Shown here piece by piece: positions 8,575-19,213 of a stretch of DNA of 63,839 nt. The DNA is from Podarcis melisellensis (lineage: Eukaryota). Position 1 is the first letter of the stretch. Every line of letters begins with the position of its first letter. Location: the NCBI GenBank assembly GCA_964234715.1, contig OZ174277.1. One strand, 5' to 3'. The notes under the pieces are model-generated. The model had not been told where the DNA came from, did no database searches, and was given only the letters and a program-made list of their open reading frames with translations. Position numbers and translations under genes: made by a program.

Positions 8575-9009
8575 TGTAATGGTTCTAGGGGTTGCTCGTG
8601 AGTAAGCCGGTGCCAACACCTGGCTGGGTTGCCTGAGTGAACCTTTTCTGTCCGGACAGCCACTCACCCATGGCTGTCTCAATCACTGGCAGAATCCATC
8701 AGTGGGCGTTTCTTGAACTTCTTCCAGCAAAGAAGCTCTTTGACGCCTAGTCTCCTCCTACTCTCCTTGCGCGGAAGCCTTCTGCGCAAGGAGGGTGTAG
8801 GCAGCGAAGGACCCTTACTCTCCCCGCTGGTCCCCAGCAAGGAGTCATGGGACCGCCTCGCCGATTCCCCCATCTGCCCCCCTTCTCCACTGGTGCTACG
8901 CTGATTCTCTTCCCCAGTAGATGGGCTGCCTCTCCCCATCCCGGGACGCTCTCTGGAATCCCTCTGAAGCCCGCTCTCTCCCTCCGGCACTGATGGCAGT
9001 TCCCTGACA
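8575..9009 (-). mobile_element. Solo LTR (435 bp), probably Gypsy/chromovirus
   Basis: Minus strand begins TGTCAGG and ends ATTACA. Flanked by a perfect 5-bp TSD GTGAC (8570-8574, 9010-9014). GC-rich against AT-rich flanks. Confidence 0.88.
8679..9008 (-). CDS. LTR-encoded open frame (109 codons, no ATG start), putative integrase C-terminal extension
   Basis: Open from LTR base 2 (GTC AGG GAA CTG = VRELPSVPEGESG...) to the stop at 8681-8679. Ser/Glu/Gly-rich N-part and basic end (PTPSLRRRLPRKESRRRLG...KKFKKRP). Confidence 0.45.
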   Translation of the reverse strand, partial: VRELPSVPEGESGLQRDSRERPGMGRGSPSTGEENQRSTSGEGGQMGESARRSHDSLLGTSGESKGPSLPTPSLRRRLPRKESRRRLGVKELLCWKKFKKRPLMDSASD

Positions 9010-12098: not shown

Positions 12099-13631
12099 TA
12101 ATATATTTAATATATTTTCAACTAATTTAAGAGTAGTTTAAGTGATTTACTCGTCAAGTTGCAGAAGTGTAAATGAAATAAGTATAAATAAAACACAGGT
12201 AAAATCAGTAAAACCTCTGAAAAGGAATTATTGATTAACAAAGTTGTGTGTTGACCCATCTAAGTCTGTTTTGGTCACTTCACTACCTTGATTCCTTGCA
12301 ATATGCCACCTCCGTGGGGACGCAGACTGCTGCATTGTGTATCAGTCCCTTTTGCCCTATGGCACTTTAAATCCGGACCTTGCACCTCCAAGTCTGCCAG
12401 ACTTTCATCACAGTTCAATTTCAATTAAGCCACTCACTATTTACAGCAATGTAACGGAAAGTAGATTTTGGCTCATTATCACTATAAATCTGAAGTAATA
12501 TACTAGTGTCTCAAGACATTACTTCATTTTCATAACTAGGAGAAGATTTCATTTCTGTGGATTTGTGTTAAAAGCAATTTGGAAACTTTGCAACAATGAT
12601 ATTACCATAAAACTGAAAGCAATGAAAGTATCATGAGGAGCAGCTATTGCGTAATCTTCATATCTAATTCTTCCATCTTAATTACTGTGGGAATTTAAGT
12701 GTGCTATGTTCTTAAGTACTCTAAAGAATTAGCTCATTTAAGAAGAAAAATATCATTATTTTGAAATAACCTTTTCTCTTTCCGCTCTCCATTTTGTTCT
12801 TAAATTGTAATGTGTCTGTGTGTCAGGGAGGGGGTATATCCAAATCTTTATAATTAGAACCAGAGAACAGGGGCAAGTCTGGGAGTTCACTGTGGCGTAA
12901 ACCAACTATGATTCTTTTCTATTATTAGGACATGGGTAAAAAGCTAGTTCCTTGGGTTATTGCAAATGCAGCTTAAAAAATGAGTGGCCAGCATAGCATC
13001 GGAGGAGCAAATTGCAACACAATTCTATGCATTACTCAGAAGTAAGTCATGTTTAGTTCAATGTAGAGTGTACCCAAGTGACACAAGATTTCAACCATCT
13101 ACAATACCTACAATCAGGACTGGTCCTACCCATTAGGCAGAGTGAGGCAGCTGCCTTTGGCAGCGGATTGTAGAGGTTAGAGAAGTGGTGAGATGTTGGG
13201 AGGACAGAGCTGCAGAGTTGACCACAATCCCCGGCCTGAAGCCTCAAAGATTAGCCTGCTACCACCAGTCTTGGAGTAAAATTCAGCTACCCATCTAGAC
13301 AGCTTCTGTACGTGCCCTTTCCTGGGTTCACCCTGTGTGATGGCCTGGGATTCCGAGTCTGAGAGCGATCCGGAGGAACCCCAGCCGGCACAGGAGTCCC
13401 CGCCTCCAGGGCCGGCTGAACTGGGGCAAGGCCTAGTTGCTGAGGAAACTCAAGAGCAGGCACCAGGTGAAATCATTCAGGCCCCAGAGGTGCTGGAAGA
13501 CTCAGTGGCTACAGGTGAGCCTCCTCCAGGACCCAGTAACCCTTCGGCCTCTCCTGATCTGCAGAGGCTTAGGGCAGAGAGGCGAAGGGAACTGGTGTCT
13601 CCCAGGAGGAGTGCTCGCCTTAAGGCCAAGA

Positions 13632-13717
13632 GAGGCGGGGCTTCTGGGGGCCGGGACCGCCCCCGGCCTTAGAAGAAGATAAAGGTCAGGCAGCCCGGTC
13701 TCAGGTTGCGGGAGCAA
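13632..13717 (+). promoter_or_regulatory. Putative LTR core promoter and transcript 5' end
   Basis: GC boxes (GAGGCGGGG, CCGCCCC) and a TATA-like GATAAAG at 13678. About 30 nt downstream lies GCGGGAGCAA (13708-13717), which is complementary to the PBS. The TSS position is inferred. Confidence 0.6.
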
Positions 13718-13780
13718 CGTCGTTGTGAAGTATCTGCTTTACCCAGTCCTTGTTTGGCACTCTCAGTGTGCCTATTCCTC

Positions 13781-13951
13781 GCCTGGATTCCTGCTTCTGC
13801 CTTACCAGTGTTCCTGCTTCCCCGCCTGGATTCCTGCTTCTGCCTTACCAGTGTTCCTGCTTCCCCGCCTGGATTCCTGCTTCTGCCTTACCAGTGTTCC
13901 TGCTTCCCCACCTGGACTCCTGCTTCTGCCCTACCTCCGTTCCTGCTGACC
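13781..13951 (+). repeat. 43-bp tandem array in 5' LTR (3 perfect + 1 degenerate unit)
   Basis: Unit GCCTGGATTCCTGCTTCTGCCTTACCAGTGTTCCTGCTTCCCC at 13781, 13824 and 13867, with a degenerate copy from 13910. Confidence 0.97.
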
Positions 13952-14017
13952 TGCCCGGCTCCCTGTTGATCTTGGCCTACGGTAATAATACCTCATCCCC
14001 CCTGGGACCAGCACAGT

Positions 14018-14027
14018 TTGCTCCCGC
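14018..14027 (+). promoter_or_regulatory. Primer-binding site of self-priming (Tf1) type
   Basis: TTGCTCCCGC starts after a 2-nt spacer following the 5' LTR and lacks the TGG expected for tRNA-CCA pairing. It is the exact reverse complement of LTR 13708-13717. Confidence 0.75.
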
Positions 14028-14078
14028 CTCACCCGCACTCCCTCTTTGTTGGGGTGCGTTCGGGAAGATTCAGAGGCC

Positions 14079-17000
14079 ATGGCTGACCAAGCGGCTACAT
14101 TGTTGGCAATAGCCCAGGAGAACCAGGCCTTGACGCACACCGTGCAGCAGCTCAGTAACGTGGTTGCGGCACTACAGCAGCGTTTGGACGCCCTACCGGC
14201 TCCTGGGGCCGACGCCCCGGCTTCTGGCAAGTACCCAGTGGCCTTGCCTGAGAAGTTTGATGGGGCTCCGGCCAGCTTTCCCATGTTCCTTGCCCAGGCC
14301 AAGCTGTATATTCAGGGGCGCGCCCGGAACTTCCCCGACGACCGCACCAAGGTGCATTTTTTGATTAGTTTGTTAAAGGACCAGGCGGCCAAGTGGGCGT
14401 TGCCGCTGCTCAGGCAAGACTCCCCCTTGCTGGCAGACTACGGGGGGTTTTGCAATCTGTTGGAGGCCGCGTTCGGCAACCCTTTGAAGGGGAGTCAAGC
14501 CAACCGGGCGATTCGGCGGTTGAGACAGGGCAAGTCCAAGGTGGCCGCATACACCACAGAATTCCGGCTGCTGGCACAGGACTTGACCTGGAACGACTCT
14601 GCTCTTCGGGACCAGTATCTCGAGGGGCTTTCAGATGAGATACTGGACCAGCTGGCCACAATGGAACGCCCCACCACGCTAGACGCTCTTATTCAGCGGA
14701 GTCTACAGATAGACGATCGGCTAGAGGACCGGCGTCAGGCTCGGGGCCGCCGGCACCTCCAGTTCTCGGCCCCGGGGTCCACCAGCAGCCCCACAGGCCC
14801 AGCTGAGTCATTGGAGGAACCCATGCAGCTTGGGGCAGTGCGGCCACGCCTCTCCCCCGCAGAGAAGTCGCGGCGTCGGGAGGGGAATCTATGTCTCTAT
14901 TGTGGCGGAAGCGGACACTATGCACGATCCTGTCCTGAGAAACCGCCAACCCCAGTAGCTGATGGCCCTGGCTCCCTGGGGTCCCAAACAGCACAGAATG
15001 GGACCGCACCAATCGAATTACAACACCTTATGGTTCCGGTACATCTATACCCTCCAGGAGGGCCATGGATTCTTACCCATGCCCTGGTGGATTCAGGGGC
15101 AACCCGCTCTTATATGGACGCTGCTTTTGCTGCCCAGCATCGGGTGCCACTTCGGAACAAGCCAGAACCGGTACAGGTGGAGGCAATCGACGGACGGCCA
15201 CTGCGTTCGGGCGCCGTCACTCGAGAGACCCAGCCCCTGGTCCTGTGCCTCCAGCAGCACCGTGAGATGCGAACTCTGGATATTGCCTCCATGCCCCGGT
15301 TCCCCCTGGTGCTTGGGATGGACTGGCTAGAGGATCACAATGTGCAGATTGATTGGGTCAAACGGACTGTACACTTCCCAGACCCCAGTTCGTCTGCTGA
15401 GACTGAGATGCTAGCAGCTGTGCCCACTGAGGAGGCTGCTGCAACGCTCCCCGCGGAGTACCGGGACTATCACGACGTGTTCGAGGAACGGGGGGCAGAC
15501 CAGCTGCCGCCGCATCGGTCCTTTGACTGCGGCATAGACCTCCAGCCCGGAGCGCCTCTACCGGTGAGTCGCTTATACTCGTTAACAGAGCCAGAGCGCG
15601 AGGCTTTGCAGGACTTCTTGCGCAAGAACCTGGAGCGAGGGTTCATTAGACCTTCTACCTCGCCCACTGCTGCGCCAGTGCTCTTTGTTAAAAAGAAATG
15701 TGGGGAGCTCCGCCTTTGCCATGATTACCGGGCCCTGAACAAGATTACCATCCCGGACCGGTACCCCTTGCCCCTTATTTCGGAGTTACTGGAGCGGGTG
15801 CAAGGGGCGCAGGTGTTCACCAAGCTAGACCTCCGGGCAGCCTACAATTTGATTCGGATCCGCGCCGGGGATGAGTGGAAGACAGCATTCGGGACCCGGT
15901 ACGGACAGTTTGAATACCTGGTTATGCCCTTTGGTTTGTGCAACGCGCCTGCTGTGTTTCAACGGTACATCAACCACGTATTTCAGGACTTGCTAGACAA
16001 GTACGTGGTGGTGTACTTGGATGACATTCTGGTTTACTCTCGTGACCCGGCGTGCCACGAGGGCCATGTCCGGACCGTGCTGCAGCGCTTGCGCGAGCAT
16101 CGTCTGTATGCAAAGCTCAGCAAGTGCGAGTTCCATCAGCAGTCAGTGGACTTCCTGGGTCATCGACTCTCACCAGGTGGGGTGCAGATGGATCCTGGGA
16201 AGGTGGCAGCGGTTCGAGAATGGGCGGCACCTCGGAACCGCAAGGACCTACAGCGTTTCCTGGGGTTCGCCAACTATTACCGGACCTTCATTGCGGATTA
16301 TGCTCACCGCACCACCCCGTTGACCCGGCTTCTGCGCCCCAAGACGCCGTTTTCCTGGGACAAGGAGGCGGAGGAGGCATTTCAAGGGTTGAAGGCCTGT
16401 TTCCAGAGAGCGCCAATCTTGCAGCATCCGGATCCTTCTCGACCCTTTGTGGTAGAGACTGACGCCTCCAGTACGGCTCTCGGTGCCGTCTTGTCTCAGC
16501 AGCACGAACCGGAAGCGCCACTCTTACCCTGCGCCTTCTATTCCCGCCAGCTCCTTCCAGCGGAGCGTAACTATACCGTGTGGGAGCGGGAACTGCTGGC
16601 CATCAAGGTGGCCTTTGAGGTTTGGCGCCACCATCTTGAAGGAGCAAGACACCCGGTGGAGGTGAGAACCGACCACCGGAACCTGGAATACCTCCAGACC
16701 ACCCGCAAGCTGAACCAAAGGCAGATCCGGTGGGCGTTGTTCTTTTCCCGGTTCCAGTTCCGGATCCGCTACATCCCTAGCTCCCAAAACCAGAAGGCGG
16801 ATGCCCTGTCCCGGAAACCTGAAGACAACGCAGACACGGTTCAGCAAGCAGCACCCACCACGATCCTACCACCAGCTGCATTCCTGGCCACCCAGGAGGT
16901 TGAGCCACTGCAGGCTCGGGTGCGGGAACAGCAACGGGTCGACGCTTGGGCCCAGGAACGACTCCGGGAACTGGCCGAAGGATCATGCCCTCAGTATCCA

Positions 17001-18716
17001 GGGCTGGTTTCGCATCAGGGTCTTCTGCTGCACCACGGGCGCCTGTACATCCCACCAGGGCCGCTGCGGGCTGAGGTTCTCCGGATGTCCCATGACGCTC
17101 CAGCGGCGGGGCACTTTGGGCGGTATCGGACCACCCATCTGGTAAGCCGTGAGTTTTGGTGGCCCCGCTTGAAGGCTGACGTGGCTCGCTACGTCGCTGG
17201 TTGTGACGTCTGCAGGCGGGCCAAGGGGCCTACCGGGCGACCCCCCGGCCTTCTTCAGCCGTTGCCGGTTCCACCACGTCCTTGGCACACAGTTTCTCTA
17301 GACTTTGTAGTGGAGTTACCCCCGTCTCGTGGCTGCACCTGCCTTCTAGTTTTCTCCGACCACTTCACGAAGATGGTGCACTGTGCCCCCTGCCCATCCA
17401 TACCCTCAGCTAAGGAAACCGCGCAGCTGTACCTTCAGCATGTCTTCCGCCTGCATGGCCTACCTGAGCGTGTAGTATCCGACCGCGGCGTTCAGTTCAC
17501 GTCCCGGTTTTGGCGTGCTTTGCACCAGGCCCTCGGAACAGAGGTCTGTCTCTCATCTGCTTACCACCCACAGACTGATGGCCAGACAGAACGGGCGAAC
17601 GCGGTACTGGAACAGTACCTCCGGTGTTACTGCAGCTACCAGCAGGACGACTGGGTCGACCACCTAGCATTGGCGGAGTTCGCTTATAACAACGCGGTGA
17701 ATGCGTCCACCCAGCAGACCCCGTTCCAAGCCAGTTATGGCCTTCACCCACGGTTGTTTCCGGATGTGCTGCCGGCATCTGCGGTCCCTGCGGTGACAGA
17801 GTGGCTTCAGGAGCTCCAGTCCCAGCAACAGCTGTTGATGGAGCAGCTGCGCCAGGCCAAGGAGGCGTACAAGGTCCAGGCCGACCGCCACCGCCAGGTG
17901 GGGCCGGAACTTCACGTTGGTGACTTGGTATGGCTTTCCACTCGCCACCTCCACCCTTCTCGACCTTCGCGGAAGCTGGACGCCCGGTTCACCGGCCCGT
18001 TCCCTATTGTGGACCAGGTCTCGCCTGTGGCATTCCATCTCCAGTTGCCAGCAAACCTGAAGGTTCACCCGGTATTCCACAGGTCCCTTCTGAGTCCGGT
18101 GGCCCCACCCGACGAGTTCCACCCAGACCGTCCCCGACCGCAGCCAGTTTTGGTGCAGGGAGAGCCAGAGTACGAGGTGGAACGCATTCTGGACTCCCGA
18201 TACCGCAGGGGAAGGCTGCAGTATCTCATTGACTGGAAGGGGTATGGGCCAGAGGACCGCTCCTGGGAACCAGCGGTCAACGTCCACGCACCTGCCTGCA
18301 TCCGGGAGTTTCATGCAGCGTACCCCAGCAAGCCGGGTCCGGGCCCTCAAGTGAGGGGGGGGCCTGGGAGGGGGGATGGTGTGATGGCCTGGGATTCCGA
18401 GTCTGAGAGCGATCCGGAGGAACTCCAGCCGGCACAGGAGTCCCCGCCTCCAGGGCCGGCTGAACTGGGGCAAGGCCTAGTTGCTGAGGAAACTCAAGAG
18501 CAGGCACCAGGTGAAATCATTCAGGCCCCAGAGGTGCTGGAAGACTCAGTGGCTACAGGTGAGCCTCCTCCAGGACCCAGTAACCCTTCGGCCTCTCCTG
18601 ATCTGCAGAGGCTTAGGGCAGAGAGGCGAAGGGAACTGGTGTCTCCCAGGAGGAGTGCTCGCCTTAAGGCCAAGAGAGGCGGGGCTTCTGGGGGCCGGGA
18701 CCGCCCCCGGCCTTAG
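14079..18716 (+). CDS. Gag-Pol polyprotein, single ORF, 1545 aa from the first ATG (Gag/CCHC, protease, RT, RNase H, integrase, chromodomain, LTR-encoded tail)
   Basis: ATG in strong Kozak context gccATGg. Motifs in order: PEKFDG Gag, [14 protein letters not shown] knuckle, LVDSGAT (~15090), YLDD (16014-16025), ETDAS RNase H, H..H..CDVC plus D-D-E integrase, [24 protein letters not shown] chromodomain (~18168-18320). No internal stop. Confidence 0.97.
18366..18376 (+). promoter_or_regulatory. Polypurine tract (PPT)
   Basis: GGGAGGGGGGA ends 3 nt before the TG start of the 3' LTR at 18380. Confidence 0.88.
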
Positions 18717-19102
18717 AAGAAGATAAAGGTCAGGCAGCCCGGTCTCAGGTTGCGGGAGCAACGTCGTTGTGAAGTATCTGCTTTACCCAGTCCTTGCTTG
18801 GCACTCCCAGTGTGCCTATTCCTCGCCTGGATTCCTGCTTCTGCCTTACCAGTGTTCCTGCTTCCCCGCCTGGATTCCTGCTTCTGCCTTACCAGTGTTC
18901 CTGCTTCCCCGCCTGGATTCCTGCTTCTGCCTTACCAGTGTTCCTGCTTCCCCGCCTGGATTCCTGCTTCTGCCTTACCAGTGTTCCTGCTTCCCCACCT
19001 GGACTCCTGCTTCTGCCCTACCTCCGTTCCTGCTGACCTGCCCGGCTCCCTGTTGATCTTGGCCTACGGTAATAATACCTCATCCCCCCTGGGACCAGCA
19101 CA
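18380..19102 (+). repeat. 3' LTR (723 bp)
   Basis: Direct repeat of 13336-14015 with one extra 43-bp unit, followed by TSD CCCTG. Confidence 0.98.
18825..19038 (+). repeat. 43-bp tandem array in 3' LTR (4 perfect + 1 degenerate unit)
   Basis: Units start at 18825, 18868, 18911 and 18954, with a degenerate copy from 18997. Confidence 0.97.
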
Positions 19103-19213
19103 CCCTGCCAACAATGTACAATTCCAACGAAAGTGATTGTGTGGAAGAATTTTGTAGAGGAAAACAAAACAACTTTGCCATTAATATACTTGATTTTCCT
19201 GAGATAGCATAAC

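Follow-up and report, generated by a model that had tools for sequence, protein, structure and literature searches.

A probably selected integrase tail encoded in the long terminal repeat of a Podarcis chromovirus carries an HMGN-like motif and may dock on the nucleosome

The DNA analysed here, a stretch of 63,839 nucleotides (nt) from the lizard Podarcis melisellensis (assembly GCA_964234715.1, contig OZ174277.1) that we call the window, contains at 13336-19102 on the + strand one complete young chromovirus, the sole copy in the window. The polyprotein open reading frame (ORF) of this element crosses the edge of its 3' long terminal repeat (LTR) as GGT/GTG ATG (the slash marks the edge; LTR base 1 is 18380) and continues for 111 codons (18381-18713) to a TAG stop at 18714-18716. 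An original prediction, made from this copy, had proposed that the integrase reads through into the 3' LTR, and the crossing at 18380 and the 111 codons in U3, the LTR part unique to the 3' end of the RNA, were both verified: the polyprotein extends inside the LTR. The tail starts with an acidic linker and finishes in a basic module containing RRSARLKAK, which had been placed at 18648-18674, exactly where it lies. We consider this tail to be very probably a real, selected coding extension of the integrase. The fuller reading, in which the basic end of the selected, LTR-encoded extension would also dock on the acidic patch of the nucleosome, is given a probability of about 0.5 on the analysis as a whole. 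The chromodomain, the parts of the tail and the adjoining LTR sites are as follows (subfamilies A to D are described below).

18171-18314, + strand: type I chromodomain whose Y/W/Y aromatic cage is complete (Pfam Chromo, 9.7e-15, residues 1365-1412)
18381-18578, + strand: acidic Pro/Glu/Gln-rich linker of the integrase tail, fast-evolving, with in-frame insertions and deletions (indels) between subfamilies
18579-18683, + strand: conserved basic end module, 35 codons, with a low ratio of non-synonymous to synonymous substitution rates (dN/dS) in all six subfamily pairs
18603-18638, + strand: predicted helix of 12 residues in the LQRLRxERRRxL region (AlphaFold2); A versus D differences 2/0/7 by codon position
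18648-18674, + strand: RRSARLKAK, HMGN-type arginine motif identified by sequence, the hexamer being present in all 13 LTR copies
18714-18716, + strand: TAG stop codon of the ORF, 6 nt 5' of the TATA-like box
18720-18729, + strand: TATA-like box AAGATAAAGG, putative core promoter, kept in A, B and D LTRs, about 25-30 nt 5' of the self-primer
18752-18761, + strand: GCGGGAGCAA, putative 5' end of R, the repeated part of the LTR (self-primer), a perfect complement of TTGCTCCCGC at 14018-14027; found at 13708-13717 in the 5' LTR

The linker (65 amino acids, aa) holds 16 Asp or Glu, 12 Pro and 0 Lys or Arg residues, and 14 of the last 45 aa of the tail are Lys or Arg. In the proposed mechanism, genomic RNA would begin in R of the 5' LTR and end in the 3' LTR; because such an RNA spans these two points, the tail would be translated only from the 3' copy of U3, as the end of Pol. 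The 5' LTR holds the same 111-codon frame, untranslated from that copy if transcription starts in R. A fast-evolving, acidic, proline-rich and disordered linker of about 65 aa would carry the basic module LQRLRxERRRxL-x3-RRSARLxAKxGG, and this module may dock the integrase, or the pre-integration complex, on the H2A-H2B acidic patch through the arginines of RRSAR, as HMGN, Dsup and Dot5 do. Such docking would add a second, histone-mark-independent nucleosome contact beside the HP1-like chromodomain. We infer that the tail would be retained on the mature integrase, would bind the acidic patch and would affect the choice of integration sites.

The tail is shared by close relatives of the element. 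With the chromodomain and tail as query, a Podarcis muralis cluster was found to be 82% identical over the whole stretch, whereas other chromoviruses match the chromodomain only. In full-length polyproteins of P. muralis, too, the tail is present down to the same terminus (P0037, 1559 aa; P0039, 1551 aa; and also P0001, P0032 and P0038). In the other chromoviruses retrieved (Anolis, frogs, fish and fungi), the ORF mostly stops within a few codons past the polypurine tract or carries an unrelated tail, and some frog chromoviruses continue into the LTR with unrelated Arg/Gly/Ser-rich sequence. A tail-only HMMER scan of 1.84 billion representatives returned Podarcis proteins only, plus a low-complexity nematode match (P0042) that was disregarded, and a profile of subfamilies A-D found no further relatives. 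The known range is Podarcis, which may only mirror which lizard proteomes include transposon models.

Four subfamilies were distinguished in P. muralis and P. lilfordi, A being the type present in the window, and the phase of the tail is kept in all of them. In B and C, the tail is about 75-80% identical to that of A, and the linker indels are in-frame. In D, the tail is 42% identical and the LTR is open over 143 codons from the same LTR phase, with LQRLRSERRRDLSTCRRSARLQAKQGG kept; the D-type solo LTR begins with the same TGTGATGGCCTGGGA. The D-type stop is a TAA inside the TATA-like box, and stops lie at or in this box in both deep lineages. Residues invariant across A-D cluster in SNP..SP.LQRLR.ERRR.L...RRSARL.AK.GG. 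The U3 frame is therefore open in relatives, phase and module being kept in the four subfamilies and in the full-length polyproteins. Near-identical words of the tail stretch are also held by public runs under eight organism labels, and in three DNA runs (three organism labels) no frameshifting indel of the tail reaches 1% of depth or more, whereas several indels of frameshifting size occur in the non-coding rest of the LTR in the same runs. The proposal that the adjacent SPRR, a consensus site for cyclin-dependent kinases, acts as a switch was not sustained by the comparison, this tetrapeptide being APRR in subfamily B and TCRR in D.

These relatives bear on the simplest alternative, in which a functionless tail arose by neutral, accidental read-through in one young copy. 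There is a single copy in the window, and a young element has had little time for frame decay; however, the four subfamilies all carry the tail, which occurs in two annotated species and under eight run labels, and its module has a dN/dS significantly below 1. We regard such an accident as highly improbable.

Selection was assessed on the DNA of 13 LTR tails (from the window, P. muralis locus L001 and P. lilfordi loci L002-L006) by Nei-Gojobori counts, with the end module aligned as 35 gap-free codons. The dN/dS of the end module is 0.10-0.35 in all six subfamily pairs. Between A and D, 17 synonymous and 14 non-synonymous differences are found on 26.7 and 78.3 sites, respectively (Fisher 3.8e-5), and the differences fall on the three codon positions as 10/3/18 (binomial p 0.004). 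Within LQRLR.ERRR.L, the corresponding counts are 2/0/7 and every conserved residue is kept. A low ratio of non-synonymous to synonymous differences per site (pN/pS) is confined to the ORF frame: the other five frames of the A versus D alignment give 0.58-6.3, with stops in all but minus frame 1, in both lineages. The linker has a dN/dS of 0.43-1.0 among A, B and C, its values against subfamily D being unreliable (ambiguous alignment, saturated synonymous sites). The module is thus more constrained than the linker, the contrast to which the original prediction had pointed. As a baseline, about 80% of the differences in the integrase are synonymous, as are 16 of its 23 top read variants. On these sequence comparisons, the module flanking the hexamer is clearly constrained as protein.

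A second alternative is that the conservation comes mainly from functions of U3 as DNA or RNA, as promoter or enhancer and, at the tip of the LTR, as attachment sites; in this case the open frame would be a tolerated by-product and the tail dispensable. This would fit the 18 nt coding RRSARL, which are identical in A and D where about 3 synonymous changes are expected at the flanking rate, and the conserved block of high read depth, which does not end at the stop but extends over the TATA-like box and self-primer, up to about 18774. It would also fit the MAWD start of the tail, whose conservation needs no protein-level cause because it coincides with the LTR terminus that the integrase must recognise. 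Unrelated frog chromoviruses read into their LTRs with arbitrary-looking tails, and GC-rich LTRs are open by chance: in composition-matched random sequences the frame stayed open in 3-5% of trials over the 111 codons of the window LTR, and in 0.6% over the 143 D-type codons. Both deep lineages nevertheless have an open frame in spite of many indels, with a joint chance of about 3e-4 if they are independent, and in each of them the stop is at or inside the TATA-like box. Moreover, constraint on DNA gives no third-position periodicity, and around the hexamer the excess of synonymous differences and the low pN/pS are found in the ORF frame only, so that codon periodicity contradicts an explanation by promoter function only. 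We consider this alternative improbable as an account of the whole tail, although part of the invariance of RRSARL could come from a constraint on U3 DNA that overlaps the coding one.

RRSARL is found in 13 of 13 LTR tails, and outside them it is absent from about 373,000 six-frame codons (window and six loci). RRSARLKA, in A, B and C, and RRSARLQA, in D, agree with the HMGN core RRSARLSA at seven of eight positions, the second serine being Lys or Gln. The pattern of short acidic-patch motifs, with Arg at positions 1, 2 and 5 and Ser at position 3, is present as RRSAR in all 13 copies and in all subfamilies. The HMGN-like motif named in the original prediction has an exact RRSARL core, but homology does not extend over the HMG14_17 domain of about 30 aa. 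When the HMGN2 peptide given in PMC3298710 was compared by BLASTP, the alignment consisted of the six residues RRSARL and nothing more. Pfam returned no family for the whole tail (E up to 0.1) or for the A and D end modules (E up to 10), and no match to PF01101; a PDB sequence search with 50-aa and 23-aa pieces of the tail (E up to 10) gave no match, and a feature search of the ESM Atlas no usable match for the tail.

What the original prediction stated on the behaviour of the HMGN motif itself is correct. By cryogenic electron microscopy, RRSAR of HMGN2 and HMGN5 was resolved on the acidic patch, where R23, the second arginine, contacts H2A E56 and H2B E113 and the last arginine, R26, serves as anchor in the pocket of E61, D90 and E92, and a phosphate on the motif serine is predicted to repel the acidic patch (PMC12487698). 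Tardigrade Dsup (RRSSRLTS) and yeast Dot5 (RRSARIAT) bind the acidic patch experimentally via their motifs (PMC12487698, PMC13347269), and both match the HMGN consensus less well than the lizard tail does. Nucleosome docking by the tail is plausible on this likeness. Capture of a host HMGN gene was considered as the origin of the motif and rejected, the similarity being limited to six residues and the acidic and basic parts standing in reverse order; because, in addition, the Lys/Pro-rich half is lacking and the second serine is replaced, capture is unlikely and convergence is simpler.

The main rival accepts that the extension is selected and takes the module for a nuclear or nucleolar localisation signal, or for a general nucleic-acid-binding tail, the HMGN match being coincidental. 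Basic C-terminal signals are common in LTR-retrotransposon integrases, and the nuclear localisation signal of Ty1 integrase is reported to be its targeting domain as well. The 14 Lys or Arg residues at the end of the tail are in keeping with this rival, as is the presence of two conserved Arg clusters that stand apart from each other (ERRR and RRSAR), and the evidence for selection fits it equally well. By inspection, however, a classical bipartite signal, with two basic clusters some 10-12 residues apart, is not conserved: the downstream cluster reads KAKR in A but KARG in B and QAKQ in D. The invariant element is the RRSARL string itself, part of a 7/8 match to the HMGN core that is closer than the validated motifs of Dsup and Dot5. 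A localisation signal and docking on the acidic patch are not mutually exclusive. Taken together, we judge a purely localising or nucleic-acid-binding module to be rather unlikely, while giving it more weight than a constraint on U3 DNA.

The selected-extension reading places the module beside a chromodomain of the type that reads methylated histones. This chromodomain aligns best to those of HP1alpha/beta (E 1e-14), with Y, W and Y at their Y/W/F cage positions; all three cage positions are aromatic in the alignment, and the aromatic-cage residues are kept as had been proposed. In an AlphaFold2 model of the chromodomain and tail, the chromodomain is folded (predicted local distance difference test score, pLDDT, 70-83), the linker has a pLDDT of about 39-52, and about 90 residues have low confidence. 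The 18603-18638 stretch forms a helix (query residues 143-157, block pLDDT about 75), and the motif is weakly helical. A tentative extension of docking is that the integrase is a bivalent nucleosome reader, the chromodomain binding methylated H3 and a convergent arginine anchor, newly evolved within the promoter region of U3, binding H2A-H2B, with the acidic linker joining the two, and that the same DNA serves as promoter, coding sequence and LTR; we find this possible, with less confidence than docking by the tail as such.

Several observations weigh against a docking tail. The docking step is predicted from motif identity, and the tail has no Pfam, PDB or Atlas match. Of the HMGN domain, the DNA-contacting half rich in Lys and Pro is lacking; RGGASGG follows the motif, in which Lys or Gln stands for the second serine. 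AlphaFold2 gives the motif as a helix whereas HMGN binds in extended form, the model being a single-sequence one of low confidence; AlphaFold 3 models of HMGN2 on the nucleosome were themselves reportedly of low confidence and in the wrong orientation (PMC12487698). As for selection, the whole tail is weakly constrained among A, B and C (dN/dS about 0.5-0.84), the deep comparison is essentially one split (A/B/C versus D), and D is known as a solo LTR only, read-through of a D-type integrase not having been seen. The LTR pairs of the same element have too few substitutions in the tail (0-2) to serve as the neutral control for which they had been intended, and the top-ranked read variants in the tail (at least 3 synonymous and at least 6 non-synonymous) neither show nor exclude constraint on the whole tail. 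The identical 18 nt of the hexamer and the conserved DNA beyond the stop, described above, count on the same side: because these 18 nt do not differ between A and D, the invariance of RRSARL is not assignable to protein-level rather than DNA-level constraint. Two further points come from individual copies. Five of the 13 LTR copies carry a single 1-nt frameshift relative to a near-identical partner LTR, which could be recent decay or assembly error, and 22 RNA reads under one organism label (run X23) run from 18637 into a diverged LTR with RRSACL.

The X23 variant reads ..L SS RRRSACL Q.. in a D-like tail, with the anchor Arg changed to Cys (CGC to TGC), and is expressed. In P. lilfordi, the LTR pairs at L002, L004, L005 and L006 are otherwise 99-100% identical and have one 1-nt tail indel each, a pattern that looks more like assembly error than decay. 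Within the tail, the sole difference between the two LTRs of the window element is at codon 14, which is CTC (L) at 18424 in the 3' LTR and CCC (P) at 13380 in the 5' LTR; in three organism labels, nearly all read depth at this codon is TCC (S). The depth of Logan contig words at 18420-18490 and 18562-18774 is 20-50 times that of the element interior and drops over 18491-18561 and over the 43-bp repeats, which suggests that there are many more LTRs than internal regions and that sub-blocks are common to several LTR families.

The coding tail shares U3 with the putative promoter. Tf1/sushi-type elements prime reverse transcription with the transcript's own 5' end, which folds back onto a site after the 5' LTR. 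The 10-nt complementarity between TTGCTCCCGC and GCGGGAGCAA is presumably the signature of this type of self-priming, and CAGGTTGCGGGAGCAAC at the self-primer is identical in A and D LTRs. From the positions of the self-primer complement and of the TATA-like box, the U3/R border would lie at about 18749, and with the border there U3 would be about 370 nt long, of which 337 (about 90%) are coding. Since the RNA reads show no clusters of starts or ends, we can only infer the U3/R/U5 borders; these reads (one run, related organism label) are of low depth and come from diverged relatives and, provided that the library is stranded, they are oriented as expected of sense transcripts.

In its other features the element is a regular chromovirus. 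The two LTRs are identical at 677 of 680 aligned bases (3 substitutions), the 3' LTR having a further 43-bp repeat unit, the ends of both are TG..CA, and a 5-bp target-site duplication (TSD), CCCTG, lies on both sides, as is usual for chromoviruses. Pfam domains occur in the order gag (DUF4939, Retrotrans_gag, Ty3_capsid), zf-CCHC, protease, RVT_1, RNase H, Integrase_H2C2, rve, SH3_Tf2-1 and Chromo; the chromodomain lies 3' of the SH3-like domain of the integrase, which is the chromovirus order, the Gag is PEG10/RTL-like and the SH3 domain is of the Tf2 type.

13331-13335, + strand: TSD CCCTG, left copy; the same pentamer is at 19103-19107, directly outside the LTR ends
13336-14015, + strand: 5' LTR, 680 bp, TG..CA, aligned to the 3' LTR
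14018-14027, + strand: primer-binding-like site TTGCTCCCGC just 3' of the 5' LTR, a perfect 10-nt complement of LTR positions 13708-13717 and 18752-18761
14079-18716, + strand: single gag-pol ORF, 1545 aa and stop, with its first ATG at 14079 (open frame 14046-18716)
18366-18379, + strand: polypurine-tract-like G-rich run GGGAGGGGGGATGG, directly adjoining LTR base 18380
18380-19102, + strand: 3' LTR, 723 bp, from the alignment of the LTR pair
18819-19000, + strand: 43-bp tandem repeats in the LTR, 3' of the putative start site, from LTR comparison
19103-19107, + strand: TSD CCCTG, right copy, from the sequence

An antisense ORF of 269 codons (17664-18473, - strand) lies over the integrase, the chromodomain and the start of the tail; we read it as a by-product of GC-rich coding sequence. 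Elsewhere in the window, a solo LTR of another family (8575-9009, - strand, 435 bp, TGTCAGGG..CATTACA, with the 5-bp duplication GTGAC) has an open frame of 108 codons when read from its second base, in the same phase, with a basic end ..SLRRRLPRKESRRRLGVKELLCWKKFKKRPLMDSASD before the stop; it is without RRSARL and is a single copy.

LTRs of the Podarcis subfamilies also appear in gene models. At L001, the D-type solo LTR (L001:7997-8640, P. muralis OZ076963.1) is the first exon of the RefSeq model LOC114604991 (XP_077791896/7), of which the start codon and the first ~128 residues, including RRSARLQAKQGG, come from the D-type LTR and are then spliced to downstream exons. Either a chimeric transcript derived from the LTR or an artefact of annotation could account for this model. 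On the opposite strand, 2.5 kb downstream of the D-type solo LTR, there is an A-type LTR. The P. lilfordi gene model CAI5790471.1 (L002:8001-32873) starts in the tail ORF of a B-type 5' LTR and splices into a receptor-family (ANF_receptor) gene; it is probably a chimeric annotation.

To our knowledge, the choice of integration sites by vertebrate chromoviruses is essentially unstudied, and the chromodomain has so far been assumed to be the sole targeting device. A conserved, LTR-encoded tail with a perfect RRSARL core makes docking on the acidic patch a hypothesis that can be tested with peptides. If true, this would be the first acidic-patch anchor on a retrotransposon integrase, a clear case of a U3 that is almost wholly protein-coding and also bears the promoter, and another independent HMGN-type motif, of a kind whose wider occurrence Alegrio-Louro et al. 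2025 had suspected. In the full-text literature, no description of an RRSARL or HMGN-like motif on a retrotransposon integrase was found; LTR-encoded integrase targeting domains, C-terminal tethers of integrases and viral acidic-patch anchors are already known, and the lizard element can be compared with each of them.

Vertebrate chromoviruses of the Tf1/sushi type share with the lizard element the domain order, the HP1-like chromodomain, the PEG10/RTL-like Gag and the self-priming complementarity; unlike it, relatives of this type in Anolis, frogs, fish and fungi end shortly after the polypurine tract or have unrelated tails. Short linear motifs at the integrase C-terminus are thought to direct integration in the case of Ty1, whose integrase binds the RNA polymerase III subunit AC40, and of murine leukaemia virus (MLV), whose integrase binds BET proteins. 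The targeting domain of Ty5 integrase binds Sir4. The partners of the Ty1, MLV and Ty5 tails are specific host proteins and not the surface of the nucleosome core, and none of these tails is LTR-encoded.

Short arginine-anchor peptides are also found in the chromatin-binding sequence of prototype foamy virus Gag, in LANA from Kaposi's sarcoma-associated herpesvirus and in IE1 of human cytomegalovirus (PMC9040877), to which the lizard motif, as a putative nucleosome tether, is alike in kind; their sequences are different, and the foamy virus tether is on Gag and not on the integrase (PMC9040877). With HMGN, Dsup and Dot5 the likeness is in the RRSAR(L) core, identical to that of HMGN, in the same spacing of three Arg and a Ser, and in the location of the motif in a low-complexity, largely disordered region; in contrast to HMGN, the lizard motif is at the C-terminus of a transposon integrase, with no homology past the hexamer and the Lys/Pro-rich half missing. 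The nearest parallel in anatomy, also stated correctly in the original prediction, is plant CRM group A, whose chromoviruses have an integrase targeting domain, the CR motif, encoded in the 3' LTR (Neumann et al. 2011, PMC3059260). In both systems the polyprotein ORF runs into the 3' LTR, over 111 codons in the lizard element. However, the CR motif replaces the chromodomain, whereas the lizard element, in a vertebrate host, keeps a type I chromodomain and adds a further module to it.

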